Shown: positions 3,317-42,979, numbered from the stretch's first letter. The stretch is DNA of 64,000 bases from Anthoceros angustus (GCA_010909165.1 MU008175.1:310001-374000); one strand, 5' to 3'. A program made the numbers and translations. Notes: generated from the sequence alone by a model not told the origin.

Positions 3317-3321
3317 GCGGG

Positions 3322-3364
<43 letters not shown>

Positions 3365-3389
3365 GCGTGTTCGATCCACGCTCACCGCA
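3317..3389 (+). tRNA. trnF-GAA: tRNA-Phe (GAA), cytosolic plant type, no intron
   Basis: 73-nt GCGGGGATAGCTCAGTTGGGAGAGCGTCAGACTGAAGATCTGAAGGTCGCGTGTTCGATCCACGCTCACCGCA; cloverleaf with A/B boxes and GAA anticodon; AT-rich upstream region with a CAA start motif. Confidence 0.97.
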
Positions 3390-8837: not shown

Positions 8838-9207
8838 TTCCTGGAGGGAATTCGCGCTGCAGAAACGAGGGAAAATTTTGTTTAGACCCCACCTCTGGGT
8901 AATCGGTTTCGTACATGCCGAGAAATTTTGTTTAGAATCCAGGCAGTAGTGGGTACCGAATTCCTCGCGTCGCGTGCTGAATTGCATGGCACTGGGTCCT
9001 GTGAGGTCCTGATTCCCGACATTTTGGGCCAGGATCCAGGGGGTCTGTAGTCTATATCCGACAATTCCATTCTCTGGCTCGCAATTTCGGTGATTTCTGG
9101 AGCGGAGCTGGGTCCAGCGTCTCGGTGCCCCACGCAGGCCTGTGATCAGGGAACGTTGTTGCCCGAGCTTGTGGAACTCGGGGCATTCTTCAGACCCGAA
9201 GGTTCGG
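8838..9207. promoter_or_regulatory. Bidirectional promoter/5' UTR region between MCM8 and the oxidoreductase
   Basis: Divergent ATGs are only 370 bp apart; a repeated AAATTTTGTTTAGA motif occurs at ~8874 and ~8923. Confidence 0.65.
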
Positions 9208-10816
9208 ATGGCCCCTGGCACTTTCAGAGCTGTGGTTTGCAGGAAGCTAGGAGATCCAACAGCTCCTTTCTCTGACTCCTCCGCCCTGCACATCACGCAA
9301 TTGCCCCGGACAGAGCTGCCGTCCACCACTTCTGTCAGGGTTGGATTGAAAGCTGCAAGCGTGAACTTCGCCAATGTCCTGGTGGTTCAGGGACAGTATC
9401 AAGACAAGCCACCTCTGCCTTTCGTTCCGGGCACTGATTTCTCTGGTGTTGTGTTGGAGGTTGGATCGGATGTGGCCGAGGTCAAGGTTGGGGATCCTGT
9501 TTGTGGAGTTGCTGATGTAGGTGCATATGCGGAGGAGGTGGTTGTGGACCAGCAACGAGTGTGAGCACCTTGCACCTCCCACATGTGTGTCATGTGTGTA
9601 AGTGCATGCAAGGTGGCTGGAATTGTAATTGTTATAGGTCACATGAATGTCGCTGATGTCATGCTCCTGCAGGTTCGTTCTCCCCCCGAACGTGGACTTG
9701 GCAGCTGCAGCAGGGCTTACCGTTGCTTTTGGCACTTCACACTTGGGGTTGGTGCACCGAGCAAATCTCCATTCCGGCCAGGTATGTGTAACAGATGGCG
9801 ACCTCTCGTCCTTCTCTCCCGTAGGAAACTGCATCACCGTTGGCTAGACACGAAACTCCAAGGGCCATCACTTGTTCCACTTCCTTCTTCAAGAGAGTGA
9901 AGCTCAGGCTCAGCTTGTGGACTGGTCCAGGTACTGCTGGTCTTAGGTGCTGCAGGTGGAGTTGGGCTGGCTGCTGTTCAGATAGGGAAGATCTTGGGAG
10001 CCACAGTGCTTGCAGCTGCTAGGTTGTACTTCCACTCTCCGAGACCTTTGGCTTTGTGGCATTGCAGCCTTTCTGTTGCTGTCCCCATTTGAGGTCTGAC
10101 ATCTGGTGTTGATCATCGTTAGGGGACCAGAGAAGGCAGCACTTCTCAAATCCTTCGGTGCAGATTATGTGGTTGATCCAAGCGATGGGAAGCTGATAGA
10201 CTCTGTGAAGGCATTCTTGAAGTCACGGAAACTCAAAGGTGTCGATGTCTTTTATGATCCCGTGGGGGGGAAGTTATTCAAGGACAGTTTGAAGCTACTG
10301 AACTGGGGAGCTCAGATTGTGGTCGTGGGTTTCGCAAGCGGTGACATACCCTCCATTCCAGCAAACATCGCTCTCGTAAAGGTGAGCATTCTCAATGTGT
10401 AGCAGCACATGCAACGAGAGTGTTGGCCAACTGCCAAAAGTTGTTTATCCCACATTCTGTTCTCTGTGCAGAATTGGACTGTCCATGGGCTGTTCTGGGG
10501 AAGCCACTTCATCCACAGGCCTGATGTGTTACGCAACTCCATGAAACAGCTGATATCATGGTTTGAGCAGGGGCTTATTCACGTAAATGTGTCCCACAAG
10601 TTTGATCTCTCTCAGGTGTAAATTATACTCCATACGTTTTTTTGCATTCTCTGGTCGCCAAAGTTTCTCCTTTAATCGTGCCGCTTACCTGAGGCTTTTT
10701 GTTTTCCTTTGCAGACCAACTTGGCCTTGGCAGCGATTCAGCGAAGGCAAGTCCTGGGCAAGGTTTTAGTCATGGTCGATGGTTGCCATAAGCTGACTCC
10801 GCCTAGTAGGCTTTGA
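9208..10816 (+). CDS. MDR-family NADPH:quinone oxidoreductase-like (GroES-like zinc-binding ADH family), peroxisomal
   Basis: MAPGTFRAVVCRKLGDP..., AASVNFANVLVVQGQYQDKPPLPFVPGTDFSG, nucleotide-binding LVLGAAGGVG, GVDVFYDPVGG; last exon 10715-10816 ends in PSRL*, a PTS1 signal. Confidence 0.9.
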
Positions 10817-11330: not shown

Positions 11331-11385
11331 TTTCCATCTCTGCCTATTTATAAAGTCTCCATATATTCCCCTTTGCTCATATGAG

Positions 11386-11882
11386 AGTAAGAAGCATTGC
11401 AGCATGCAGCCCTTGATCCAGTTTAGTAAGTTATAAGTAGTGGTAGTAAGCTTAGCTTAGGGATTAAGGAGGATAGTCTGCTTTATGCAGTTACTTTGGG
11501 CATTACGTAAGCCTCCCTATAAAAAGAGATGAGGCTAGCTCTAGAGATATCATCCTCTGATCCTAGCATTTGGAGCCACACTGATAGGACTAAGGTGCCT
11601 ACAGGCTTTGGGAGCCTAGAGTGTAAGCGTGCTAGAGGAGAGCTGTTGAAGAGGAGATCGAGGGGAGAGAGAGTTAAGCTCCTAGCTTAGGCAAAGATGG
11701 GGAGCTCTCTTTGATCTCTCATATATTCTTGTTGACTTTTGCTGGAATAAGAGGAGCGGCAGAGGTGCTGATTGCGAGTCATCTTGTGGGAGGATGGCGG
11801 GCTACTTGGAGGCCTAGTATCTGGTGATGTTATTGCCGCTAACTGCGTGACTGCCCCACCTCGCTGGAAAAGGGGTGTTACT
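11386..11882 (+). repeat. 5' LTR of the Ty3/gypsy element (497 bp)
   Basis: Colinear with 35313-35834; contains TATA-like CCCTATAAAA; followed by the PBS. Confidence 0.9.
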
Positions 11883-11936: not shown

Positions 11937-13049
11937 ATGGCCGATCCTCAAGAGCCAGGCAGAGCAGAGAGAATATGGTGGAAGAAAGAGAAGGCTCTTG
12001 TATTGGAGACTGTAGTGGATGAGCCTCAGATGGAGCCACTAATTCTTGGAACGATGTACGCAGATACCTCTGAGCCGAAGACTGTCACCATACCACAAGA
12101 GGAGCTTCAAAATCTTTTGAGGAGAATAGAAGCTCTAGAGCAACAAGCAAAAGGAAAAAGAAAGCTCGATGAAGTAGAGAAGGATGATGAACTGGACGAA
12201 TTGGAGCCTGGCCTAGAAAAGAGTGGAGCAAGGAGACCCAAGAAGTTCAAGTTAAGCGTTCAGCCCCCCGATAGGTATAAAGGAGAACGAGATGTGGAGA
12301 AAATCAATTCGTGGTTTTTCTCATTGGAAGGATACTTTACATGCAGGATTCCAGGAAGGTATCTAGATCACATCGTTAACTTCTTAGAGGGGTACGCTCT
12401 TACTTGGTGGAGAACTTATGTTCAGAGTATTGAGCAGGGTAATAAAGTGGAAACTATTTCCAACTGGGGAGAATTCAAAAACGCATTGCAACTTCAATTC
12501 CAGCCAACTAATGCATCTATGCTAGCAAGAAGGATGCTAGAGAATGTGAAGCACACAGGAACGTTGCGGCAGTATGTGAGTGAATTTAGCATAGCTGTTT
12601 TACAATGTCCTGATATGCAGGAGGTAGATAAGCTCCATAGATTTTATAGTGGACTTAAGAGATGGGCTCTGAATAGAATTCAATTGACAAAACCTCAAAC
12701 GCTGCGAGAGGCTGTTGCAGCTGCAGACGCGATACCTGACACAAGTCGTGCCGTGGAAGCACCAGTGTCTTCTAGAGGAAGATATCCAAGATCTTTTCAA
12801 AGAAGATCGAGAGGTAGAGGAAGAGCCACCAACACTGGGAATAGTGGAACAAAAGAAAATATTGGTAGAGGCAGAGGAAGAGGCAGAGGAGCCAATAGAG
12901 GTCGTGGCCGTGGAAGCCAAAGGGTGACAGGCCCTCAATTTGGTGCGTGCTTTAGTTGTAGAGAGCAGGGACATTTTGCAAAGGATTGTCCGCATGCTGG
13001 GAATTCCCAATTGAATATGATAGTCGCCGCTCCAAGACTTGGGATCTAG
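11937..13049 (+). CDS. gag: Ty3/gypsy Gag, open 370-aa ORF
   Basis: Retrotransposon-gag core (FLEGYALTWW...WGEFKNALQLQF), RG-rich region and CCHC knuckle CFSCREQGHFAKDC. Confidence 0.92.
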   Translation: MADPQEPGRAERIWWKKEKALVLETVVDEPQMEPLILGTMYADTSEPKTVTIPQEELQNLLRRIEALEQQAKGKRKLDEVEKDDELDELEPGLEKSGARRPKKFKLSVQPPDRYKGERDVEKINSWFFSLEGYFTCRIPGRYLDHIVNFLEGYALTWWRTYVQSIEQGNKVETISNWGEFKNALQLQFQPTNASMLARRMLENVKHTGTLRQYVSEFSIAVLQCPDMQEVDKLHRFYSGLKRWALNRIQLTKPQTLREAVAAADAIPDTSRAVEAPVSSRGRYPRSFQRRSRGRGRATNTGNSGTKENIGRGRGRGRGANRGRGRGSQRVTGPQFGACFSCREQGHFAKDCPHAGNSQLNMIVAAPRLGI

Positions 13050-24308: not shown

Positions 24309-26662
24309 CTGTTTACGCGCAAGAAGAATGAAGGACTGTGGATGTGTCTAGATTACAGAGCTCCGAATCAAACTATAGTTAAGAATGCATATCCTTTGCC
24401 TAGAATGGATGATATGTATGACAGGTTGAAGGGTGCCAAGTATTTCACCGAGCTAGATCTGATGGCGGGGTACAATCATATTAGAATCGCATAGGGACAT
24501 GAGTACAAAACACCATGTAGGACGAGATATGAGTCTTTTGAATTTTTAATTATGCCATTTGGACTTACTCCTGCTCCTGCCACATTTGAGACACTTATGA
24601 ATACTATATTCATAGATCTGGTGGACAAGTGTGTTGCAATCTATCTGGATGACATATTAATCTTTAGCCATACCTTGGAGGAACATGCTGAACACCAATG
24701 AGAAGTGTTACAAAAGCTAAGAGAGTCTTTTTTCTTGGCAATTCTGAACTGTGACTTCGTCAAGACAGGCTTTATTATCTCTGCTGATAGCATCAGAATG
24801 AATCCTAATAAGGTGAGGGCCATTCAAGATTGGCAACCTCATAAGAATATTCATAAGGTTCGAATTTCGAGTTTTATGGGTTTGGCTTCTGTGTACAAGA
24901 GATTCGTATATATGTTTGCTAAGATAGCAGCCCTCATAACTGACCTCTTAAAGATGACGAAAGCTTGGAAGTGAGATGTTGAATGTCAAGCAGCATTTGA
25001 ATACTTGAAGATGAAATTGAGTACTATTCCAATATTAGGAATATATGATCCCAAGAAGAATGCGGAAGTATACAGCGATGCTTCAAACGTGGCCATAGGT
25101 GGAGTGTTGATGCAAGACCATAAGTCGATACCTTTTGAGTCAAGGAAATTGCATCCTTATGAGTTGAAGTATCCCACCGATGAGAAGGAAATGATTGCAG
25201 TCATTCATTGTCTGAAGATGGCAAGAATTCCTAGTTATGTATGATGTGCCTCTCAAGTATAAACCTGGAAAAGAGAATAAGGTTGCAGATGCACCGAGTC
25301 GCAAAAAGAGTAAGGAAGTAAAAGCAATGGCAATAGTGGTTGAACCTATGGACGTTCACAACAAATCAAGGAAGCATATCTGCAGGATCTAGATGTTTAG
25401 GAATGGATTAATGAAATAGAACAAAAAGGAAGCAAACTCAAGCTAAAGAATGGTTTGTTGATATACAAACCGAAGAGGACTATGATCCCAAATTCTTCAG
25501 AGTTGAAGAGCAAATTGCTGCTTGCTGAATGTCATGATGTGCCAAGTGCAGGTCACAGTGGAAGTGACCCCACTTATGAGAAGCTAAGGAAGCTTTGTTA
25601 CTCGCAAGGAATACATTAGGATACAGTGGATTATATCAAGGCATGTGCTGTTTGTCAACAGGATAAGGTGGAGCAAGCTAAGCCAAGAGGTTTGCTACAG
25701 TCCCTACCTATCCCAAGTGGACCATAAAAGAGTATCTCCAAGGATTTCATCATGCCTTAACCACCCAGTAATGGATGTACAATTATCATGACAATGGTGG
25801 ATAGATTCATCAAACAAGCACATTTCATCCTTACAAAGAAGGGAGTGACGGCTTCTGAGTTAGCAAATTTATTTAAGAAGTATGTATACAAGTACCATGG
25901 CTTGCCCATGCAGATTGTGAGTAATAGGGATTTGAGATTTACAGGAGAATTTTGGCATTATGTGCAGATTGATCAGAGGGATTGGGGTTTTCATCTAGAC
26001 GATGCAGAATTTTGTTATAACAATACTGCACACAACTCTCTGGGATGTAGTCCTTTTGAGATGGGAGAAAATTAAGCATTGGATGTGGTAGCCATGCTAA
26101 ATGCTGAAGTTTTCGACGCTACCACTAAGGATCCACGCCAATTCATTGAGCAGTTGCAGGCTAGGCATGAGATTGCCAAAGGAATTTAGCCAAGGCTCAA
26201 GCACGTTAGTAGAAATATGCTAATAGGCACAGGGGAGAAACTGTCTTCAACGTCGGGGATAAAGTATGGGTGAATTGAAGCATTTCCCATTACCTCAAGG
26301 ATTAACTCTTAAATTAAGGCCAAGATATGGTGGTCCATTTGTAGTCTTGAAGTGCATTGGAGAAGTGGCTTACAAGTTACAACTGCCTGAATGGATTTTT
26401 GCACACAATGTGTTCCTTGTATTACTACTGAAACCATTTGTGCCAGGCGAGTAAGAGGAGATGTATAAGAAGAAGTATTGTATTCTCGTGCAACATAATC
26501 AAGGATTGCGAAAAATTGAGGAATTCCTTGCAGAGAGTAGTGTGCCTACCATAGTATATGGTAAAGTTGCGTGGGATCTCAGATCGAAATCGGGTAACGT
26601 TAGAGAATATTCAGAAAGGATCCTGCATGATCACTCGATACGTTGGCTGATCATTGAGGACA
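24309..26662 (+). pseudogene. pol: Ty3/gypsy pol, 3' part (RT, RNase H, integrase, possible degenerate chromodomain-like tail)
   Basis: WMCLDYRAPN..KNAYPLPRMDD, YLDDILI, DASNVAIGGVL, CHDVPSAGH, MVDRFIKQAHFI, KLRPRYGGPF..VAYKLQLP; many stops. Confidence 0.88.
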
Positions 26663-27300
26663 AACAACGTCTGGGTAGAAAGGGGTTTCTCCAGTAACCC
26701 CTTCTTGCACATGTCTAAGGATGGACCCCTTTTTGCACCATGCAAAATCCGAACACAAATCGGCTATTCTGTAGCAAACCCTCGTGTTTTCCCTATAACG
26801 AAGAAGCAGTTGCTTTCACATAATGTGTGTTAGTGAAATGCACAAAGAATAATGACAAAGATGAAACTGTAGTCCACCTTGTGGACTTGTGTATATCGGA
26901 AAAATATTACGCTTCAGGCGCAAACATGCGCGCCCGCCTACCGCCAAACCCTAATTTATGTTCACATTCTCAATCAGGCAACTCCTCAAACGTTTGTGTT
27001 TCTGATCTCGGGACAATAATGTCATCGTTGATAGATCAGAAGCAGGATCACAACCGCAAGATTTTGATCTGTTGGGTTTGCCCCTATAGATCCGCCCATG
27101 CCGAACGTCTGTAAATGCTGAATCTCCCAAGTGGGATCCTTCACCGCTAGGGCTGTTTCTTGCTCATCGACTCGCTTCTCGGTGTTTCTGATCCTTTCGT
27201 TGTTGCTTTCTCCTTTTTCTTCTGTGGTCCCTGGGATTGACTCAAATCCTGAAGATCGATGGGAGCGGAAGTGCCATGAGTTAAATGAAGAAACGACGCT

Positions 27301-29990
27301 CTAGACTTGATAGACCTTCCGCCTGCTAACTCCTCGCTTATGTGGCTTGGTTGTCAATTCTTCCTCATCGCTAGGGAAAACCTCATGCCCTGTTATCCGT
27401 TGATCAATGAAAATGGTGCTTCTTTGCTCCTGGTCGATGGCGATGCAATTGCGGCCTTCCAATAATGCTGCCAATATACCGCTGCCGCTCCCGGAGCACC
27501 CATCTATTACCCACTCCCCTCTCTCCGTGAAAAGGTCATAAAGCAGAACCATAAGCCCTATTGGTTTCTGGTAAGGGCATACAACATGTCCATCGTTTGA
27601 CACATTCAGAAGTTTCTTCACGACGGCGCTGTGTCTAATGAAAGCGGGCATGGCTCAATCTCCTCGCCGCATCGTTGCACAGCAGACTGCATTTCATATC
27701 TTCGATTTTAGGGTGGACACCATACCCTCTTGTAAAATATTCACAATTCTCATATAGACCTTCATCCGCAATTAAATTATCTTTCTCCACACCATGGTAT
27801 ACACACCCTCCAAGACACCATTTACGGCGCATTCAACGCCCCGCATCCGATCCGGACCATGCATAAATACCACTCGAAGGTTTTGCATCACATCATGAAC
27901 CCATCCATGATTTTTCATAATCTTGGATGTCATCTCGATCCCGATTGATACATTCCCTCTTGGCAAATCAACAACCAGCGGTTTGTATTCCCGCTTCCAA
28001 GATAGCCGCCATTTCGCGAATATCACGGTAATTACTTGGTACCGACTTTTCTGTTTGCTTTTGGGACTTGGAACGTGGATAGTTTAGCATCATTGTCCTC
28101 CTCTGCTAGTTCTCTCTGAAGGTCTTCCACCCTCTTCCGGTTCCTTCTTTGCGTTGATATGCTCTTTGAAGCTATCTCGAATGACTTTTCTTTGTACTCT
28201 GCCGCTTCAAAAGTCTGCAGTACCAAAAAGCATTGTGAAATTTGACAATGATGGGGATGCGCAAACAAGTGCGCGCACCTAATCCATGCACGATAGCAAC
28301 GAGAATAACTTACGATGTGGTCGAAACCGGTTGAAACTTTGCGATATCATCCGCCGAGTGCGTGGTACTCTCTCAACCTCTCGCAAATGACGACACCGTA
28401 AACCCGAATAAAGTCGCTTGTATCACATTTAACTTTTTGCCTTTATGATCCACGTCTTCATGCCGCCACGCTTAACTCTCCTCGAATTACTTTCTCCAGT
28501 CTTGATAGCATAATCCGTTCACCGCCTCTCCGGAGGCATTCCTCGAACACCCGCCATCCGTGCATGCATTGGCTTTACAATAAGATTCGGATCTCGCATC
28601 ACCGTTCGTTCAGGCCGCCACGCTTGATTTCCTCTTTTGCTGCCTTTTTGCGCTCGCCCTAGAAGCTCCTTTTCTCCCAAAGGTCGAATACTTCATCCAC
28701 CCTATCCGGACATGCGGGACACTGCAATGCAGCACAACGTTTTCGGTCTACCAACCGTGCATATCTTCACGGGCGGCATCCCGATCACGCCGAGCATCCT
28801 GCGATTGTATTTCCAGTCCATAGTAATGTTAACGCCATCCGCAGCCGCAATCTTCATCTCATCGTGGATGTATCGAACTTGCTCGATGAAGACATCCGCT
28901 TCAAATCGGCCTTTACATTGTGATCCGCTACAAACATCTCATCTCGGCTTCAACCCGGCATAGATATGGGCTTCCATATATTGGTAGTGCGAATTCTCGG
29001 GTCCTCGGCATATAGTCTCTGGAAAGCATAGAAGCTGTGATTTCCTCCTAAGACTCCCATAGTGTATTGTTGTTTCTTCAGCTTATCCTTATCGTGATGG
29101 GGATCTGGGCACTCTCTTGGGTCTATCATACAAAGCAGGGGAAGTACTCCTTCTTGCACTGGTCCCTTTTTTATTTCTCGGAGAAGATGTTTTCCCCAAG
29201 ACTCATCTACTCTTCTGATTTGAGCATCACGGGTTAAATAATCAGCGCTTCTGAGCTTGGTGATGGCAACCATGTCCGTGTGAGGGATGCATCTCTTCTT
29301 GTGTCTTGACTCCGGTTGGTTGAGAGGATCCTCTACTGCCCGCTCCACTCTATCACCGTCATCAACGCTTTTGTAATCACCGCCTGCTGACTATTGTCCA
29401 CGCTGTATGCGTAGCCCTCTTCACGCTTTTGCCCTTGCCTTTCCTTTTCGTAGTGTAACAATTTCAAGATCCTCCTCTGTGTCCTCGCCTTGGGTCTGCT
29501 CGCCTTTCTTCACCTTCTTCTCTTTCGACGATATATCCCTTGCTCTTTCGCTTCGACATGGATGTTTTCTAGACTCTTCAATATTTGTTCACCGATGGCA
29601 AAAACAACTGATTTTGGATGCATTTGAGGACCGCTTGGATAGTCCCTCACTTTGGGTCTCCTCATTCCTATTCATCTCGCTGCTCAAACCACGGCTTCAA
29701 CATCCGCCTCCTCATCATCTCCCTCCTCTTCGCGATCCCCACTATCGCTTCATCCTCAACCTCTCTATCCGATTGGCGCTTCATACCTTCTGATCTTGGT
29801 CCATGGAGTCTTCGGATAGTTCTTCCTCCATAGCTGCAGACGACGGCGGCTTAGCAGATGTTGCAAATTGCAGCCGTCTTCCTTCCGCCTTCTCCACAAT
29901 AGGTTGACCACCACGCTTGCCATCTTTGTCATAATTAAGCCAACTACGATCTCTTTGCGGAGAAAGCGTGGCATTCACAAACGCTGTGAA
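27301..29990 (-). CDS. ParB/Srx-like domain + beta-class N4-cytosine/N6-adenine DNA methyltransferase fusion (frameshifted in this sequence)
   Basis: Acidic/Lys-rich N-terminal region; ParB-like IRRVDESWGKHLLREIKK..PLLC..YTMGVLGGNHS..(Y)MEAHIYAGL..DHN..RMS(F)IEQVRYIH (29350-28850); in-frame GT-AG intron 28313-28215; MTase VWRKDN..YENCEY; motifs X-I CPYQKPIGLMVLLYDLFTERGEWVIDGCSGSGSGILAALLEGRNCIAID (27580-27435). Catalytic motif IV is readable only as VVDLPRG (27975-27955). Confidence 0.8.
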
Positions 29991-30104
29991 GAAAAACCGA
30001 AGAGGATTACCATCCGCGGCAAAAATTGAACAATGGAAGACAACTTCACAAGCGGCGGCGGCGGCGGTCGCGCATAATGCGCACACAGCCGGCTAAGGGG
30101 CATG

Positions 30105-30345
30105 TGCGCGCTGTCGCGCACCATGGGCCTCTGAGCCAAGGGAGGGGTGGAGGCGGTGCGCGCACGCGCACCATGGCGCGCCCATGGCGCGCCATGGCGC
30201 GCCCTTGGGCGCGCCCATGGCGCGCCCTTGGGCGCGCCCATGGCGCGCCCATGGCGCGCCCATGGCGCGCCATGGCGCGCCATGGGCCTCTGAGCCAAGG
30301 GAGGGGTGGAGGCGGGATGGCGGTGCACGCGCGCCATGGCGCGCT
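30105..30345. repeat. Small GC-rich CCATGG/GCGC palindrome array
   Basis: About 11 CCATGG plus CCTTGG separated by CGCG/CGC; flanked by a duplicated CCATGGGCCTCTGAGCCAAGGGAGGGGTGGAGGCG module. Confidence 0.9.
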
Positions 30346-30441
30346 GCACCATAGAGGGGCCTTTGGCGCACAAGAGTGCCTCGAGGCGGCCCGTCGTTCA
30401 AACCACCCAGGTTAGAACTGAAAACATAGAAACAAGCTCAC

Positions 30442-31189
30442 CTTGTCTAGTGTAAGAGCAACGTCAAGTCCTATCTTCAGGTCCGGTGTGTTGCAGCGTC
30501 TCGCAATCAACTTATCCGCGCTCAAGACAAGCATCCGATGACAATTAGAAGTCTTCATGTAAAACTTCTCTTTCATAGTGCAGATCAAAAGCTTCACTCT
30601 CACATTTGATCCGACTGACTTCCAAGCCCATAGAATGTAGCCCACCACTATCTTCTCGTCTTCAACACGTCCATGTATCCATTGATAACAACTGGATTGG
30701 ATCAAAGTTGGCCGAGTGGAATCAAGACTTCTCTTCATGGATGCACCATTCCTTGTCAAGTAGACCTTGTTCAGGAAGATGCGCACATATCTTCTTCAAG
30801 GCAGTCCTTTCTCGCGAAGTGAAAGGGTTCTCGAGCGTAGTGCCTGGAACAATGCCTAGTTTGTCAAACAATGTCTGGGTACTATCTTGACTAACGATGC
30901 TCCCTTCGACCTCTTCTTCCCTTGAAGCCCTTGGGACGCTCCACTCTTCCTTGTGAGTTCCCATGTGCAATACCCTGCAACGATTCCCTTTCGTTTCAGA
31001 CCACCACATCACCCCCTGCCTTCCCCATTTCCTAGCAGCCCTTGCCTCGGCCTGTGCATCGTTTCGCTTTCGCTTGGAGGGAGGTTGCTGTGGAGGATGG
31101 TCCACTACGTTGGCGTGCTTCACACGGACTTTTCTCCCACTACTTGATATATCTGGAATCAAAAACACGCAGGAATGAAAATCGGCCAC
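30442..31189 (-). CDS. Uncharacterised cargo ORF of the Sola-like element, possibly an upstream exon of the ParB-MTase gene
   Basis: Two overlapping ORFs joined by one frameshift: NLS-like PPSKRKR, then TLFDKLGIVPG..WIHGRVEDEKIVVGYILWAWKS..LDVALTLDK, ending at a strong donor AAG|GTGAGC (30441). Confidence 0.5.
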
Positions 31190-31465
31190 ATGTTAGCAAC
31201 TGTCCGTAGAGAATACAATTTAAGGGGCACCAACCTGCTATTTCGCATTCTCGAGAAGGTCGGTGATGATTCTTGCAGAATCCTGCGAGAACACACGTTT
31301 CGAGACTCTGGAGAGCCTCAGCTTCCTGCAAATCACCAAAACATTTTCATTGTATCGATTATGAACACGAATCCTTGGCATGCCCTTGGCGCCTTGTCAA
31401 GGGCACGTATGAGGAACATTTGGGCACGCCCGCGCACGCCATTGGCGCGCCCTTGAAAACCTGAC

Positions 31466-32048
31466 TTGCGCGCACGCGCCCATGGCGCCATGGCGCCCAT
31501 GGCGCCATGGCGCGCCCTTGGGCACGCCCTTGGGCAGGCCCTTGGGCGCCCTTGGGCGCCCATGGCGCGCCAGCGCGCCCATGGCGAGCCATGGCGCGCC
31601 GCCGACCAGGCGCCCGCCGGGCTTGGCGCGCCCGCCAGCGCCAGGCGCGCCCATGGCGAGCCATGGCGCGCCATGGCGCGCCCATGGCGCGCCATGGCGC
31701 CATGGCGCCCATGGCGCCCATGGCGAGCCATGGGCGCGCCATGGCGCCCATGGCGCGCCATGGGGCGGCGCCTGCCCAGGCGCCCTTGCTGGGCGCCATG
31801 GCGAGCCATGGCGCCATGGCGCGCCCTTGGGCGCGCCATGGGCGCGCCCTTGGGCGCGCCCGGGGCGCCATGGCGCCATGGCGCCATGGCGCCATGGCAG
31901 CCATGGCGCCATGGCGCCCATGGGCGCGCCCTTGGGCAGGCCCTTGGGCGCGCCCTTGGGCGCGCCCATGGCGAGCCATGGCGAGCCATGGCGCCATGGG
32001 CGCGCCCATGGCGCGCCCATGGCGCCATGGCGAGCCATGGGCGCGCCC
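31466..32048. repeat. Large GC-rich CCWWGG palindrome array between the cargo gene and the transposase
   Basis: About 38 CCATGG and about 10 CCTTGG (manual count) with GCGC/GGCGCC/CGAG spacers over ~580 bp. Confidence 0.95.
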
Positions 32049-32749
32049 TGCCCGCCTCCAATCGCTTGGTACATGCACGCACACAGCCAGAGACAATCCC
32101 AAATCCTGGATGCAAACGGTGATATAAGACTGAAACTGCGCACCGCGCCCAAAACATGTGGAGCAAACCCTAAAAACGGGCTCTTCCCGTTTTTTAGGAT
32201 GCCCTCGGTTAAGATGGAACCATGGTTAATTAACTAGGCTTGAACCCTGACTTGTTTAACCAAGGGTTAAGTAACCTGGGATTTACTAAACTTTGTCGGG
32301 TTGCCGCTATAGAGTTTATTTTGTGGCGTCATCATGTCCAACCATGAAGTCCCCTAATTTGAGCGTTCGGATTACGGGGCCACTATCCTTTTCACATTCT
32401 CCTCTCATACCGTGTGGGTACCTTCATCCAAAGATATCAGCAATGCAGAGCCCTCAAACCTATGGCAAAATCGGGGAAGCAGGTATCGCGGCAATGGAAG
32501 AAGAAGTTGTAGGAGCGGTTTCAAATCGCCTCGGAGAGTGGGCAGACGCCAAGACAGTGTTCATGGATACGACGCCGATGCTTCTATTCCAAAAGCGGGT
32601 AATGGTCATGGATACGACTCCATTAGAGAATGACGAAGTTCTTCTTTCCCAAGGCCTAATCTTTTTGATAAAGATCCGAACAAGGAAGTGGCGGGGCGTG
32701 GATCTCGCGCAGAAGATGCTCTCGACGGGCGCGGCTATTCTACGATCGA

Positions 32750-34187
32750 CGACGAAGGCGTTTCCAATTTGCTCCATGGAAGAATCGCACGGTGGTTTTG
32801 GAGGACTTGAGCAAACTTCAATCCCAAAGCTTTGTCGGAGACTTTCGTGCGAGCCCTCAAAAACGTCGGAATATCCCAGACGGTGGAAGCGTGCGCAAAG
32901 GTTGTGTTCTCTTGGCGAGTTGAGTGCATGGTCGTCGCATTGTTGTAGCAAAGGGTGTTTCTTTGAAAGTTGGAAGGAAACATATAGAAAACCTCGGTAT
33001 CGCTTCTTGGGAATGGGTCGAGAGCAATCAGATTTGGAAAGTCCGCTTGAGGCAAGTCTATCCCGACACAACAAAGGTGATCAACTACCTCTCGGAGACC
33101 GAACGCAATGTTGTGTTGAAGTTTTATGGTGTTACGCATTGGATGGAGAGCAGATTACGATCCGATCAATGTGGTTCTCAACACACCATGGTCATCGAAA
33201 TGAAGGTCCAAGCCCGTCAAAGCAAGACCATGTGCTAGAATGCATTGCTTGGATGGACCAATTTTTAAGATAGCTGCGGGCGCATGCCAAATGTTGCGGT
33301 GTTCAACCCGCCTTCTACCTAAGGCGAGATCTTCCAAGACTACAAGCGGGAGGTGGCAGGCGGGGATGTCAAGCGTATCTCACTCTCATTTTTATGCATT
33401 ATGGAAGATGCACTTCCAATGTCAAGATCCCAAAGTGCAGCCCAAATGTACAGAAACTATCAAGACGGCCATTGACACGATGAGACGAGACCAAGGTCCA
33501 AGTGTATCACTGAAGTGCAAGCGAAGGCAAGAGAGGGAGTGCACGACTTGCGGGCAAGGAGTGCCCGATGCGGGCCCGGGCGCGCGCAAGGCGGCGCATA
33601 CTATGCCACAAGCGCGTGCAAGTGTGCGCCAAGGGCTGGCTACCGCGGCAAGCGGCGCCGCAGCTGGCGCCTCGGAGGCGCGACAAGTGCGCCGCGACCG
33701 CCGCTCATACGCTTGACGCCAAGACTTGTGCGCCGCATCGCGCGCCCCTCCGGGGTAAAGTGGGAGCCCCAATCACAAGACTTATGCTCCGCTATGCAAT
33801 ATCTGAATCTCACATCTTCATGGTTTCTTTGGCGTAACGCTTGAGAGCGAATCGGGTCGCAGAGTTCAAAGCAAGAGCGATGGCTTAGCGGGCATCGGCT
33901 GAAGTCTTGGCGCGGACAACCCAGCCCGATATATTGGAATTGCTATAGATGGTATGGACGAGCAAGACCGAGCGTGACTTCACGCAGGCCAAAGATTTCG
34001 CCGATGGGTTAATTCGTGTTCATGTTGTTGGTTGTTTGGTATACAATAATGTGATGAAGGCGAAGGTGTATGTCAACTATCCGAACATCCGCAATGATGC
34101 CAACTGACGATACATATTATTCAAGATATTATACTCAACTATGACGGTGTCTTGCCAAAGACCTTTTACCTTCAATTGGACAACACG
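32750..34187 (+). pseudogene. Sola-like/DUF7869-type transposase, frameshifted; C-terminal catalytic part not found
   Basis: N-terminal CCSKGC, LKFYGV, CIAWMDQF, HFYALWKMHF..KIPK; first catalytic Asp YIGIAIDGMD (33945-33959); RVHVVGCLVY..NIRNDAN; second Asp TFYLQLDNT (34170-34187). The expected RENKN/GHTHxxxD segment is not visible after 34187. Confidence 0.75.
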
Positions 34188-35312
34188 TTTGGGTTGCAGA
34201 GGTGGAGAACCTAGATTTCGACGAAACCGCACCAGTCGTGCAATGGTGGGTTACGGAGAAGAATGCATTTGAAGGCCGTTAATATATACCAAGAGATTTT
34301 GAACAGTGCGGACAAGAATGCTCTCGTCAAAGGCAGGCGTCAAAACATCTCGATCGCCTTGTCTTGGCGGAGACCTTTATTCTTTCATATGGGTTTGCCA
34401 CGGCGAGAGAGCACGCTTTATGTGAGAACCCAAGAGCTCATAAAGACCAAGCTATTTGAACTCCACCATATGCAAATCGGAACACAGGAATAACGATAAC
34501 GGCACCCACCACCTTGAGGCGCGAGGAGAAACGTTTCACCATACAGTCATGGTCAATGATATTAAAACCCAAGACCATGTTCGAGTTGAGGATGATCCGC
34601 GAGTCCATGCCGGCCAAAGCATTAGTTCTGGACCAATTGCGAGACGGACACGCGGACGAGGTATTGGAGATCCTAACCCAGTCGGGGTTTTCGAAGGCAT
34701 GTTTGAAGATAGCTCCCAACCAGCGTCCGACGACGCGAAGGAAAAAAGCAGCGTATGACCATGTTTGTCCTCGTAATTGCGATCCCTCATGGTAGATGGA
34801 AGAGATGATCTTCACGCACACCATTGAGTATCACCTATATTGGAATAATAGCGATTTTGCATTGCGGTTGATTTGCAAACTTCATCCGTCCAATAATTTC
34901 ATGTTAATCATTCTACGGATAGCGGACCCAATATATAATGCATGAGAACGTGAGTACGCGACTTTTGCGCGCACTCATATCTGGATGCAAGCCGGCCGAG
35001 CAAACCCCATGTTCTGGATGACATGAAGACATGCTAAAAAACCTAGCAAAACACATATTTAATTTCATTTACACCTTCTTAAATGGCTCTTTCACTGCCT
35101 AAATGGAGGTACGGTGGGGCCAAAACATGCAGAACCGGGCACCCTGGAATACATCACTGTATTCCAAGTCGAGTGCACATGCTGAAAACCAGGAAAACAT
35201 CCATGGGCATTTTGCCCTAAGAAAAGGACTTTTGCCTAAACCCCTTATTACCGGAGAAACCCCTTTCTACCCAGACGCTGTTGACAGTGATTCTTTTCCC
35301 AATGGGGGAGAA

Positions 35313-35834
35313 AGTAAGAAGCCTTGCATGAGAGGCATGCAGCCGTGGGTCTAGTTTAGCAAGTTGTAAGTAGTGGTGGTAAGGCTTAACTTAGGGCTTA
35401 AGGAAGATAGTTTGCTTTATGCAGTTACTTTGGGAATAATGTAGGCCTCCTTATAAAAGGAGATGAGGCTAGCCCTAGAGATGATCATCCTATGATCCTA
35501 GCATTTGGAGCCACACTCGTGAGGATAGGACTAAGGTGCCTACAGGCTTTGGGAGCCTAGAGTGTAAGCGTGCTAGAGGAGAGCTGTTGAGGAGGAGAGC
35601 GAGGGGAGAGAGAGTTAAGCTCATAGCTTAGGCAAAGATGGGAGCTCTCTCTAATCTCTCATGTATTCTTGTTGACTCTTGTTGGAGTGAAGAGTGACGC
35701 ATAGGTATTGATTGCAGTCGTCACGTGGGACGACGGTGGGAGGACAATGGGCGACTTGGAGGCCTAGTGTTGGTGTCTAGTGATGTTATTGCCGCTAGCG
35801 TGATTGCCTCACCTCACCGGAAAGGGGTATTACT
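35313..35834 (+). repeat. 3' LTR of the Ty3/gypsy element (522 bp)
   Basis: Homologous to 11386-11882 but visibly diverged; AGTAA..TTACT ends; preceded by the PPT. Confidence 0.9.
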
Positions 35835-37142: not shown

Positions 37143-38369
37143 ATGGAATCGGGCCTGCTCACCGAGGAGCAGAGGCAGCTGCTGCGCTCCGCGTCGCAAG
37201 GGCGCGAGGCCGCCGCCGAGGTCGGCTCCCCGAAGCATGCCGACGGCATCAAGCTCCTCAAGGCGAATGCCGGGGCGTCCGCCAAGGCCGGCGACAGGAA
37301 ATCGCACTCCGGAAAGAACGGTCGTCCCAAGAAAGGTGCATTACCGCTTCTTTTGCTGCCGAATGCGGCGTCATTGCTCCATGTCTGCCTCGGCCGAATT
37401 GCGGGGTGGGAACTCTGGCTGTGACCTGACCCGGGGCGGGGATGGATGTGTGTCCGTTCAGGCGGCGGAGGCGGGAAGGGGACGTGGGGTACCCTGTTGG
37501 ACTCTGATGGCAAGCTGCAGGTGGACCGGAACGACCCCAATTACGACAGTGAGGAGGTATGTTCGTGGGTTCTCCGGCGGGTTCGGCTTGGCTTGTACTG
37601 GACTGGGCGTCGGGGTTGCGTTAGTGATATGGGTTATTGTTTGCAGGAGCCGTACAAGCTGGTTGGAGCGCCCATTGCGCAGTCTCTGGAGCAGTACAAG
37701 GAGAAGGTGGTGGCGATCGTGGAGGAGTACTTTGTGGCGGACGATGTTGTGGAGGCGGCGGCGGGGCTGCGGGATCTTGGGTCCCCGAGTTACCATCACC
37801 ATTTTGTGAAGAAGCTTGTGTCCATGGCGCTGGACAGGCACGATCGGGAGAAGGAGATGGCGTCCGTTTTGCTGTCGGCGCTGTACGCGGATGTCATCCA
37901 GGCGGACCAGGTGGCCAAGGGCTTCACCAAGCTGCTGGAGGCGGCGGATGACCTGGCTCTGGACATTCCTGATGCTGCGGATATTCTGGCCCTGTTTCTG
38001 GCTCGTTCTGTGGTGGATGATATTCTGCCGCCGGTGTTTCTGTCCAAGACGGTGAAGTTGCTGCCGGAGGGCTCGCTGGGGGTGGAGGTGATCCAGAAGG
38101 CTGACAAGACCTACTTGCTGGCTCCGCACCATGCAGAGATCGTGGAGCGGCGGTGGGGAGGTACTACGCATGTAACAGTCGAGGAGATGAAGAGGCGGAT
38201 CGGGGAGTTGCTGAGCGAGTATGTGGAGAGCGGGGATAAGGCGGAAGCTTGTCGGTCTATACGGGAGCTCAATGTGCCGTTTTTTCATCACGAGGTTGTG
38301 AAGAAGCGCTCACTCTTGCCATGGAGAAGAGGAAGGCGGAGCCTCTGATTTTGTCTTTGCTGCATGAGA
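37143..38369 (+). pseudogene. MRF: 3'-truncated copy of the MA3/PDCD4 (MRF) gene
   Basis: Exons MESGLL..RPKK, GGGGKGTWG..NYDSE and EPYKLVG.. through MA3-1 into MA3-2; cut at 38369 by the LTR copy. Confidence 0.85.
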
Positions 38370-38871
38370 GGCATGCGGTAGTGGGTCTAGTTTAGCAAGT
38401 TGTAAGTAGTGGTGGTAAGGCAACTTAGGGCTTAAGGAAGATAGTTGCTTTATGCGTTACTTTGGGAATAATGTAGGCCTCCTTATAAAAGGAGATGAGG
38501 CTAGCCTAGAGATGATCATCCTATGATCCTAGCATTTGGAGCCACACTCGTGAGGATAGGACTAAGGTGCCTACAGGCTTTGGGAGCCTAGAGTGTAAGC
38601 GTGCTAGAGGAGAGCTGTTGAGGAGGAGAGCGAGGGGAGAGAGAGTTAAGCTCATAGCTTAGGCAAAGATGGGAGCTCTCTCTAATCTCTCATGTATTCT
38701 TGTTGACTCTTGTTGGAGTGAAGAGCAGCGGCATAGGTATTGATTGCGAGTCGTCACGTGGGACGACGGTGGGAGGACAGCGGGCGACTTGGAGGCCTAG
38801 TGTTGGTGTCTAGTGATGTTATTGCCGCTAACTGCGTGATTGCCTCACCTCGCTGGAAAGGGGGTATTACT
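38361..38871 (+). repeat. Duplicated copy of the gypsy 3' LTR, missing its first ~12 bp
   Basis: Nearly identical to 35325-35834 and followed by the same flank TGAGCATAG, so it arose by the tandem duplication and is not a new insertion. Confidence 0.88.
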
Positions 38872-40190: not shown

Positions 40191-42979
40191 ATGGAATCGG
40201 GCCTGCTCACCGAGGAGCAGAGGCAGCTGCTGCGCTCCGCGTCGCAAGGGCGCGAGGCCGCCGCCGAGGTCGGCTCCCGAAGCATGCCGACGGCATCAAG
40301 CTCCTCAAGGCGAATGCCGGGGCGTCCGCCAAGGCCGGCGACAGGAAATCGCACTCCGGAAAGAACGGTCGTCCCAAGAAAGGTGCATTACCGCTTCTTT
40401 GCTGCCGAATGCGGCGTCATTGCTCCATGTCTGCCTCGGCCGAATTGCGGGTGGGAACTCTGGCTGTGACCTGACCCGGGGCGGGGATGGATGTGTGTCC
40501 GTTCAGGCGGCGGAGGCGGGAAGGGGACGTGGGGTACCCTGTTGGACTCTGATGGCAAGCTGCAGGTGGACCGGAACGACCCCAATTACGACAGTGAGGA
40601 GGTATGTTCGTGGGTTCTCCCGGCGGGTTCGGCTTGGCTTGTACTGGACTGGGCGTCGGGGAGGTTGCGTTAGTGATATGGGTTATTGTTTGCAGGAGCC
40701 GTACAAGCTGGTTGGAGCGCCCATTGCGCAGTCTCTGGAGCAGTACAAGGAGAAGGTGGTGGCGATCGTGGAGGAGTACTTTGTGGCGGACGATGTTGTG
40801 GAGGCGGCGGCGGGGCTGCGGGATCTTGGGTCCCCGAGTTACCATCACCATTTTGTGAAGAAGCTTGTGTCCATGGCGCTGGACAGGCACGATCGGGAGA
40901 AGGAGATGGCGTCCGTTTGCTGTCGGCGCTGTACGCGGATGTCATCCAGGCGGACCAGGTGGCCAAGGGCTTCACCAAGCTGCTGGAGGCGGCGGATGAC
41001 CTGGCTCTGGACATTCCTGATGCTGCGGATATTCTGGCCCTGTTTCTGGCTCGTTCTGTGGTGGATGATATTCTGCCGCCGGTGTTTCTGTCCAAGACGG
41101 TGAAGTTGCTGCCGGAGGGCTCGCTGGGGGTGGAGGTGATCCAGAAGGCTGACAAGACCTACTTGCTGGCTCCGCACCATGCAGAGATCGTGGAGCGGCG
41201 GTGGGAGGTACTACGCATGTAACAGTCGAGGAGATGAAGAGGCGGATCGGGGAGTTGCTGAGCGAGTATGTGGAGAGCGGGGATAAGGCGGAAGCTTGTC
41301 GGTCTATACGGGAGCTCAATGTGCCGTTTTTTCATCACGAGGTTGTGAAGAAGGCGCTCACTCTTGCCATGGAGAAGAGGAAGGCGGAGCCTCTGATTTT
41401 GTCTTTGCTGCATGAGACTGCTGACGAGGGTTTGATTACCTCTAGTCAGATGTCCAAGGGTTTCACCAGGCTGAGTGATGCGCTTGAGGACCTGGCTCTT
41501 GATATTCCTCATGCCAAGGAGATGTGGCCGGGGCTTGTGAGTAAGGCGAAGGAGGACGGGTGGCTCAGCTCCGCGTTTGCTGCTGCTTCGCATGAGCCTA
41601 CAGACGGCAAGCGCAATGGTAGCGTTGGTGCACGTGGGGGAGGTGCGGCTCATGTGTCTGTGGAGGAGACGGAGAACGGCATCCGTCAGTTGCTCCGTGA
41701 GTATGTTGAGAGCGGGGATAATGCAGAAGCTTGCCGATCTATCCGTGACCTGGATGTGCCTTTTTTCCACCATGAGGTTGTGAAGCAGGCACTGTCTATT
41801 GCTGTGGAGAAGGGTGAGGCGGAACCCCGTATCTTCTCCTTGTTGCAGGAAGCTGCTGAGGAGGGTTTGATCACCTCTAGTCAGATGTCGAAGGGCTTCA
41901 CAAGGTTTCTTGATGCAGTTGGCGACTTGCCTGTAGATGCTGCTCGTGCCAAAGAGGTGTCTCAATCTCTCGTGGCCAAGGCGAAGGAAGCTGGCTGGCT
42001 GGGCCACACATTTACTAGGACCATATCTTCGGATCTTGCTGCGTGGAGATTCAAGCAGAGTGCTACCACTATTATTCAGGAGTACTTCCTGTCGGATGAT
42101 ATAGCTGAAGTCATCATGAGCTTGGAAGATCTGGCTGCCCCTGAATTCTATGCCGTATTTGTCAAGCAGCTGGTGACCCGTGCTATGGACAGAAAGAACC
42201 ATGAGAAAGAGATGGCCTCTGTCCTGGTATCTGCACTGTATGCAGAAGTAATTCCTGTGGAACAAATTCGCAGAGGCTTCATTCTGTTGCTCGAGTCAGC
42301 AGAGGACACTGCTTTGGATATTCCTGATGCTGCCAACCAGCTAGCCTTATTCTTGTCAAGGGCCGTTGTGGATGACGTACTGGCCCCTCTGGATCTTGCA
42401 GATATCGATGAGCAACTCGAGGGGAAGAGTCTTGGTAGGGAAATTGTGCACAGTGCTCGTGCACTACTCTCTGCCCGTCATGCAGGGGAGCGAGTTCTGC
42501 GATGCTGGGGTGGAGGCACTGGGCGGGCTGTTGAGGATGCCCGAGACAAGATCATCAAACTGCTTGAGGAATTTGCGGCTGGTGGGGAGCTGCTGGAGGC
42601 ATGCCAATGCATCCGTGATCTGAACATGTCCTCCTTCCACCACGAGGTCGTCAAGAGAGCACTCCTTATGGCAATGGAGAAGAAGAGTGATCGCCTGTTG
42701 TCCCTTCTGCAAGAATGTTCCAGTGAAGGTTTGATAACCACTAGCCAGATGCTGAAAGGCTTTACCCGGGTAGCCGATGCCCTGGACGACTTTGCACTAG
42801 ATTTTCCCGCGGCCGAAGGAAAGTTTGCCTCCATTGTCAAGCAAGCCAAGGAGGCTGGATGGCTCAGTGCTGCTTTTGCTCTGGATACCAAGTCAGTTCT
42901 TCCCAATGGAGTCGAGAACGGGAGTGCTGTGCACGCGAATGGCAACGGAATTGGTCAACCAAGCAAGGCTTCCCACTAG
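40191..42979 (+). CDS. MRF: MA3-domain translation regulatory factor (PDCD4/MRF family) with five MA3 domains
   Basis: Plant MRF signature KKGGGGGKGTWG..DRNDPNYDS; MA3 repeats with HHEVVKKAL/GLITSSQMxKGF. Three apparent frameshifts (~40279, ~40917, ~41205) are homopolymer deletions that are intact in the upstream copy. Confidence 0.92.

Follow-up and report, generated by a model that had tools for sequence, protein, structure and literature searches.

A decayed DNA transposon of probable Sola1 type carrying a ParB-like/methyltransferase gene in Anthoceros angustus

The element and its boundaries

Within the 64,000-nt stretch of Anthoceros angustus DNA analysed here (GCA_010909165.1 MU008175.1:310001-374000; referred to as the window), the interval 26663-35282 is very probably a dead and internally rearranged copy of an autonomous-type family of cut-and-paste transposons, the members of which carry a transposase gene as well as a gene for a ParB-like DNA methyltransferase. 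The copy is ~8.6 kb long and, as the first-pass annotation of this sequence had described, it is a discrete element bounded by terminal inverted repeats (TIRs), in which 33 of 35 nt are complementary, and by a GACA target-site duplication (TSD) on both sides. In fact, this pair of TIRs (26663-26697/35248-35282) is the sole long-range bracket of the region among the inverted repeats reported, the remainder of which are palindromic tandem arrays, and the 30-nt terminal motif of the TIRs is found at two sites in the 64-kb window, namely the TIRs themselves, against none expected by chance. Furthermore, the TIR ends cannot be slid so as to lengthen the GACA duplication to 5 bp or to shrink it to 3. 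No paralogous empty insertion site was found within the window, and a search for sequencing runs with the element itself found no run. None of the short, low-coverage contigs obtained for the organism spans a junction. The two genes of the element lie on opposite strands inside the TIRs: the methyltransferase gene is read from the minus strand (27304-29850), the transposase from the plus strand (32290-34190). The features of the element are as follows.

26659-26662, no strand: left TSD, GACA, read directly and identical to 35283-35286
26663-26697, plus strand: left TIR, terminus 5'-AACAACG, 35 nt, 94% complementary
27304-29850, minus strand: whole ParB-like/methyltransferase gene, a pseudogene in which an acidic N-terminus precedes the ParB-like core, the helical linker and the methyltransferase; upstream limit approximate
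27304-27993, minus strand: decayed beta-class N6_N4 DNA methyltransferase domain, from Pfam PF01555 and tblastn, with frameshifts at ~27800 and ~27650
28215-28313, minus strand: proposed 99-nt intron, GTAAGT...CAG, from splice signals read in the sequence
28992-29231, minus strand: ParB-like N-terminal core (..LPLLCMIDPREC..YTMGVLGGNHSFYAFQRL..), a single intact frame that aligns to the relative P0009
30165-30285, no strand: tandem array of ~11 copies of CGCGCCCATGG, directly upstream of the methyltransferase gene
31475-32048, no strand: tandem array of CGCGCCCATGG (10-11-bp unit, ~57 copies), in the interval that separates the divergent genes
32290-33270, plus strand: 327-codon stop-free segment (open reading frame, ORF, of 326 aa), possibly an N-terminal part of the transposase, with no match in Pfam or tblastn
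33909-34190, plus strand: remnant of a DUF7869-type transposase core, from tblastn, with the motifs ..IAIDGMDE.. and ..LQLDNT, interrupted by stops
35248-35282, minus strand: right TIR, partner of 26663-26697
35283-35286, no strand: right TSD, GACA, abutting the right TIR

Decay of the methyltransferase gene

The minus-strand gene is identified by its C-terminal part, a 117-aa piece of which (27304-27654) matches the Pfam family N6_N4_Mtase (PF01555) with E=1.7e-6 and 28.6 bits at a cutoff of 26.7; the scores of its relatives for the same family reach 65.7 bits. In tblastn searches with three of these relatives (P0001, P0003 and P0007), the matches cover 27993-27337, crossing stops. All of the peptides quoted at first pass (VLGGNHS, VVDLPRG, PYQKP, VIDGCSGSG and GRNCIAID) were located, and the beta-class order proposed from them for the minus strand, with motif IV followed by the target-recognition region, motif X and motif I, also holds, DLPRG (27969-27955) being upstream of both PYQKP (27576-27562) and VIDGCSGSG (27510-27484).

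In place of the readable, intron-containing gene that had been proposed, however, the interval presents at least seven frame changes as well as stops. Alignment with the family demands changes of frame at ~28975, 28945, 28900, 28040, 27993, 27800 and 27650, in addition to several in-frame stops. Frame changes occur just downstream of the ParB-like core (29231-28992) and are followed by a linker of poor conservation, the VWRKDN peptide straddles a frameshift, and the frameshift at ~27800 falls within an A-run. A host-type ORF of 592 aa situated 6 kb away is intact, and the assembly is therefore not generally indel-ridden. In the methyltransferase-domain tree described below, the terminal branch leading to the window sequence is ~3.5 times the median length. 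From the frame changes and stops, the intact host ORF nearby and this long branch, we conclude that the ParB-like/methyltransferase gene of this copy is a pseudogene, and not the working DNA-modification module suggested by the first-pass annotation.

The proposed intron (28313-28215) is in frame and stop-free, and its removal is therefore not needed to keep the reading frame. Among the RNA contigs available for the organism, which are short and of low coverage, none lies over 28313-28215 and no splice joint was found. Introns do exist among genes of the family, as is evident from Chara gene models that exceed their own coding length, and the locus of one relative (L003) has a GTGAGT...CAG intron within the same linker; a DNA alignment of the window intron region with L003 is too diverged to read. 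At L003 itself, the annotated start of P0003 (MKSSSNCILVLCQ; L003 ~750-946) resembles translated intron sequence (GTGAGT...TGCCAG), and the true gene probably extends upstream into a 189-aa ORF.

The transposase and its probable superfamily

The plus-strand transposase reported at first pass is retained as a remnant at 33909-34190, and the rest of the gene is unrecognisable. Matches in tblastn searches with DUF7869 proteins are confined to this segment (best P0175, E=2.5e-11, with 38 more in the same place), whereas the ORF at 32290-33270 has no Pfam match and no tblastn match from DUF7869 relatives, and a Pfam search over all of the plus-strand pieces found nothing. The window transposase holds the first two Asp motifs only, the third catalytic Asp motif being absent, as had been recognised earlier. 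A DNA contig from the same organism matches the window nearly perfectly over 33989-34186 and then codes for RENKN, the residues that follow LDNT in the family consensus; the window departs from this sister-copy contig at 34186/34187. The third motif was therefore taken away by an internal breakpoint at 34186/34187. Better copies of the transposon exist in this genome, the sister-copy contig continuing past the breakpoint, and the short sister-copy DNA contigs agree with a family that is repeated in the genome.

By analogy, the DUF7869 transposase is probably of the Sola1 type, given the 4-bp TSD and the published classification of an element from Ectocarpus with the same cargo (see below). Of the features that characterise Sola elements, the window copy has the 4-bp TSD and the TIRs (35 nt, 33/35) and lacks the complete catalytic triad. 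A literature search on DUF7869 found nothing.

Relatives of the methyltransferase gene and their pairing with a transposase

An exhaustive search with the C-terminal methyltransferase piece found 368 related proteins, among which there is no Marchantia protein. The architecture of the long relatives is uniform: an N-terminal domain with the motif GG(G/C/N)(H/N) is connected by a helical linker to a C-terminal N6_N4 methyltransferase. Relatives with a named source come from Ginkgo biloba, the fern Adiantum nelumboides, Chara braunii and the sea cucumber Holothuria leucospilota, in all of which the proteins are annotated as hypothetical, and relatives are also present in metagenomes. The family is multi-copy in both Chara and Ginkgo. 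A homology search from the Ginkgo methyltransferase domain found Ginkgo paralogs and one ENA protein only, with no relative in Marchantia.

A parallel in gene order is provided by a metagenomic contig of ~8.9 kb (L001), in which the gene for P0009 is arranged head-to-head with a 385-aa gene and a 580-aa DUF7869 gene. The 580-aa protein matches DUF7869 with E=3e-50 and has the Asp motifs IIDGMDQ, LDNT and GHTHEDID. TIRs of 28 nt (96% complementary) enclose both genes, and L001 is therefore a complete element, 8.85 kb long, with the layout and size of that in the window; its terminus reads 5'-AACACCG compared with 5'-AACAACG in the window (AACAnCG). In Chara braunii, CBR_g2668 (DUF7869) and CBR_g2669 (methyltransferase protein) are divergent neighbours. 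The opposite-strand layout of methyltransferase and transposase is repeated in L001 and in a Chara locus, L009.

In a tree of methyltransferase domains, the eukaryotic proteins form a supported clade separate from the phage methyltransferases, and the window sequence groups, with 98/98 support, with P0001, P0003 and P0007, which are three intact ORFs from the sequencing run of another species. The Chara braunii protein P0013 (GBG86584.1, 1825 aa) contains the N-terminal domain twice (89-287 and 1061-1262) in addition to methyltransferase motifs, which may reflect a gene model that joins two neighbouring elements, or else a genuine duplication.

The N-terminal domain

A ParB/Srx-like fold is likely for the N-terminal domain, as judged from remote comparisons that are individually weak but convergent. 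The core in the window is 34% identical (E=1e-10) to residues 126-205 of P0009. Among the language-model/structure neighbours of two independent queries in a protein atlas were ParB_N, DUF6551 and a phage 'DNA methylase/ParB' cluster, and in Pfam the Ginkgo N-terminal domain matched DUF6551 at a sub-threshold E=0.004. Alignment by hhalign with the single ParB domain of the phage Javan93 protein is not significant (E=0.087); nonetheless, it aligns the expected core, GG..A..L / C.V..L..E...N. From the register of this alignment we infer that GGNHS of the window occupies the position of the GxxR motif, which is associated with cytidine triphosphate (CTP) binding or catalysis.

In addition to the weakness of the hhalign score, a number of results weigh against this fold assignment. 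Pfam found nothing in the ParB-like piece of the window or in the linker pieces, and no ParB_N match in the N-terminal domains of the relatives. A profile search of the PDB with the N-terminal alignment gave chance matches only. AlphaFold (AF2) models of full-length P0009 and of the N-terminal domain from an 18-sequence alignment have a predicted local distance difference test (pLDDT) score below 50 in the core. Also significant is the replacement of the arginine at the GxxR position, which reads GGNHS in the window and GGGHS, GGCNS or GGCHN in the family. PF02195 is likewise absent from all of the precomputed Pfam lists of family members, and a Foldseek search of the PDB with the low-confidence N-terminal models returned nothing. 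The description of the gene at first pass as a prokaryote-type ParB and methyltransferase fusion is borne out by Pfam for the methyltransferase, whereas the ParB piece has no Pfam match. The authors who described the Ectocarpus element reached their own 'ParB-like' call with InterProScan or HHpred (PMC12477816).

Motif IV and predicted base specificity

The canonical form of motif IV, (D/N/S)-P-P-(Y/F/W), differs from the D-L-P-R of the window, and the first-pass annotation had treated the VVDLPRG seen there as a weak form of the motif. DLPRG is, however, common to the window and its three closest relatives, the three diverged intact ORFs of another species, and VVDLPRG is a conserved clade variant and not a degraded sequence. 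In a survey of motif IV across the family, D-(F/I/L/V)-P-Y-G predominates, with DIPH in Ginkgo and DMP(Q/K) in the sea-cucumber clade; the general form given for the family is D-(F/I/L/V)-P-(Y/R/H/K/Q). In the comparative literature, a serine in motif IV serves as a rule of thumb for N4-cytosine clades. The Asp-led motif IV favours N6-adenine over N4-cytosine, and points to N6-methyladenine (6mA) as a more likely mark of the family enzyme than N4-methylcytosine (4mC).

Tandem palindrome arrays

Both arrays in the element consist of CGCGCCCATGG units, and together they hold 48 of the 78 CCATGG sites in the window. A similar arrangement is seen at Chara L009, where 5-7 copies of a perfect 16-bp palindrome, GTTATAGGCCTATAAC, lie directly upstream of the methyltransferase gene, and in L001, where inverted copies of GACCGATAGCGATATACG are found directly upstream of its methyltransferase gene. 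The sequences of the arrays differ among the window, L009 and L001, and it is the placing of palindromes beside the gene that is common to the three elements. At L009, the GTTATAGGCCTATAAC arrays (9186-9515 and 12431-12580) flank the ParB-methyltransferase gene, and toward the transposase side (1522-1736) there is a tandem repeat of 54 bp that contains a hairpin-like palindrome of 31 nt. In the window, the two CCATGG arrays are separated by a stretch that includes a 155-aa ORF (30722-31189), which like the methyltransferase gene is on the minus strand; neither a Pfam match nor similarity to the 243-aa intergenic ORF of L001 was found for it.

Surroundings of the element

The left flank of the element (25788-26700, plus strand) codes for ORFs of the Ty3/gypsy integrase type, and the element appears to have been inserted into a Ty3/gypsy retrotransposon. 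The right flank is a separate repeat of ~360 nt, which lies immediately to the right of the element (35325-35686) and recurs at 38361-38717 and 11383-11746 with 97.8% and 88% identity, respectively. Read depth across 35288-35500 is very high in both DNA and RNA contigs, and the right-flank repeat is therefore a high-copy, expressed sequence.

The intact 592-aa ORF used above as a reference for assembly quality is at 41201-42976 on the plus strand and is plant MRF/PDCD4-like, with four MA3 domains; 3 kb upstream of it there is another MA3 ORF, which is shorter (37446-38345, plus strand). The two have the appearance of host genes, or of a fragment that was duplicated, in a window otherwise filled with repeats. 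A tRNA gene (3317-3389, plus strand) is the only Rfam match within the window.

Proposed mechanism and alternative explanations

The family probably encodes two divergent genes between its TIRs, one for a DUF7869-type (probably Sola1) transposase and the other for an accessory protein that begins with a ParB-like domain, continues through a helical linker and ends in a beta-class N6_N4 DNA amino-methyltransferase. We propose that, where a copy is intact, the ParB-like domain would bind the palindrome arrays of its own element (here, the CGCGCCCATGG repeats), and the methyltransferase would mark the DNA of the element, with 6mA being a likelier product than 4mC. The proposal that the arrays are bound is made because the theme of palindromes beside a ParB-like gene reported by Petroll et al. 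(10.1101/2025.02.11.637652) recurs here, and this analogy makes docking of the ParB-like domain on the arrays suggestive. The window copy itself is incapable of binding or marking, and could at most be mobilised in trans via its TIRs. Taken to its full extent, the proposal would hold that, in Ginkgo, ferns and Chara as well as in this genome, those sister copies that are intact encode an active self-marking enzyme that docks on ~70 CGCGCCCATGG units at helical-turn spacing and writes 6mA or 4mC, possibly by way of a new D-L-P-R catalytic variant; we hold this extended version to be tentative and rather doubtful.

Further observations weigh against parts of this scheme. No transcript of the element was found among the short, low-coverage RNA contigs of the organism, the flanks of L001 show no clean 4-bp TSD, and the Chara copy L005 has neither a transposase nor TIRs within 10 kb, the missing transposase being the adverse point. 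The arrays may be incidental, tandem repeats being common in transposons, and the change of the aromatic residue to Arg in DLPR makes activity of the window clade uncertain. The lone gene at L005, together with the pseudogene state of the window copy, would fit a one-off capture, in which a transposon acquired part of a methyltransferase gene, from the host or from a foreign source, in the manner of Pack-MULEs and without functional meaning. Such an event is quite improbable in view of the divergent pairing that recurs in L001, in Chara g2668/g2669 and in the published Ectocarpus element Sola1-1, the shared N-terminal domain of eukaryotic proteins that form one well-supported clade, and the retention of the clade-specific DLPRG in three diverged intact ORFs of another species. 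That the frameshifts are errors of assembly, and that this copy encodes an intact and expressed ParB-methyltransferase, is less probable still: although at least one shift (~27800) is in an A-run, where errors in long reads are typical, the at least seven frame changes and the in-frame stops are crowded into 2.5 kb while a 1.8-kb host ORF 6 kb off is intact, the long terminal branch (~3.5 times the median) reflects substitutions besides indels, the transposase breakpoint is confirmed by an independent DNA contig, and no RNA was found in the short, low-coverage contigs. Contamination by DNA from bacteria or phages, or a horizontal transfer that was both very recent and misassembled, would account for a domain architecture that is typical of phages (e.g. 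Javan93_0016), yet hardly merits credence when the phage methyltransferases are 25-28% identical and fall outside the eukaryotic clade, the element is nested amid Ty3/gypsy sequence, and the genes of the family have introns and relatives in annotated eukaryotic genomes. On this evidence, contamination, one-off capture and general assembly error were rejected as main explanations.

A different type of alternative leaves the element real and concerns its name, in that the transposase would fall outside Sola1, in a superfamily related to Zator/ISAzo13, for instance, or in one not yet described, and 'Sola-like' would be a mislabel. Pfam names the domain only as DUF7869, and in one DUF7869 cluster of the atlas 11% of the members also match PF07592 (DDE_Tnp_ISAZ013), which we take to be a family linked to Zator. 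The TSD described by Bao et al. in 2009 is, however, reportedly 4 bp for Sola and 3 bp for Zator, and it is 4 bp here. The curators of the Ectocarpus element with the same cargo placed it in Sola-1. DUF7869 is, furthermore, abundant among bivalves, cnidarians and amphioxus, and a survey of bivalve transposable elements reports that Sola elements are present in bivalves. A superfamily other than Sola1 is, on balance, unlikely.

Comparison with known systems

The element most similar to the copy in the window is Sola1-1_Ec32 from the brown alga Ectocarpus, published in 2025 (Genome Biol), a Sola-1 element of 21.5 kb that carries, on the opposite strand, the gene for a 1104-aa protein that combines a ParB-like domain with an N4-cytosine/N6-adenine methyltransferase (PMC12477816). 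The Ectocarpus paper cites earlier cases from green and red algae and proposes that proteins of this type attach to the element that encodes them and alter it epigenetically (PMC12477816). Likened by its published description, Sola1-1_Ec32 has the same architecture and is the subject of the same self-marking hypothesis, although it is from a stramenopile and is 21.5 kb long, compared with 8.6 kb for the decayed element in Anthoceros angustus. The idea of a transposon with a ParB-methyltransferase cargo is therefore already published. A second parallel is the Plavaka element of the red alga Bostrychia, in which the ParB-like accessory protein PAG3 lies beside inverted-repeat arrays interpreted as self-binding sites (Petroll et al., 10.1101/2025.02.11.637652; Curr Biol 2025). 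Here too, a ParB-like N-terminus is fused to a nucleic-acid-modifying enzyme within a giant DNA transposon, and the arrays adjoin the gene; in contrast to the present family, the superfamily is of the Plavaka/KDZ type, the enzyme is a 2-oxoglutarate (2OG)-dependent oxygenase and the methylase is on a separate protein, PAG2.

Outside eukaryotes, the same order of ParB_N followed by a beta-class N6_N4 methyltransferase is found in phage and prophage fusions, as in gp16 of the Streptococcus phage Javan93 (Javan93_0016), in which Pfam recognises ParB_N and N6_N4_Mtase; ParB-Tls loci were described by Iyer, Zhang and Aravind in 2016 (PMC4738411). The phage proteins differ from those of the transposon family in a methyltransferase-domain identity of 25-28%, in their position outside the eukaryotic clade, in having no long helical linker, introns or transposase partner, and in keeping canonical motifs. 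Fusions of this kind in phages and prophages are the likely ultimate source of the accessory gene.

Compared with these, the Marchantia proteins MpDN4MT1a/b and the bdelloid N4CMT resemble the family only as prokaryote-derived beta-class amino-methyltransferases that are present in eukaryotes. MpDN4MT1a/b are the products of host genes expressed in sperm, have TSPPY as motif IV and are described in a preprint that mentions neither ParB nor a transposon. The Ser-led TSPPY described for MpDN4MT1 sets it apart from the Asp-led motif IV of the family, and this difference, with the absence of a Marchantia relative from the searches above, leaves the earlier suggestion that the element seeded plant 4mC enzymes without support.

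Significance

Transposons with a DNA-modifying enzyme of their own are rare, and the published cases are algal. The window sequence, together with the proteins from Ginkgo, the fern and Chara, extends the reach of the module to streptophytes, including land plants. A search of the open literature found no paper on a streptophyte or land-plant occurrence, on the DLPR variant or on the recurrent arrays of this family, and these three points are likely to be new. The copy in the window is a fossil, and its value is limited to drawing attention to the family. Test objects are on offer in the family itself, namely a DNA-binding domain with arrays that are candidates for its binding sites, and a methyltransferase in which a catalytic motif is variant. 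Both 6mA and 4mC are disputed or little studied in streptophytes, including land plants. If members of the family are active, they could explain local signals of methylation other than 5-methylcytosine (5mC) in long-read data from plants, and would be an example of a transposon that influences the chromatin in which it resides; if true, the lineage of land plants would harbour a mobile element that marks itself.

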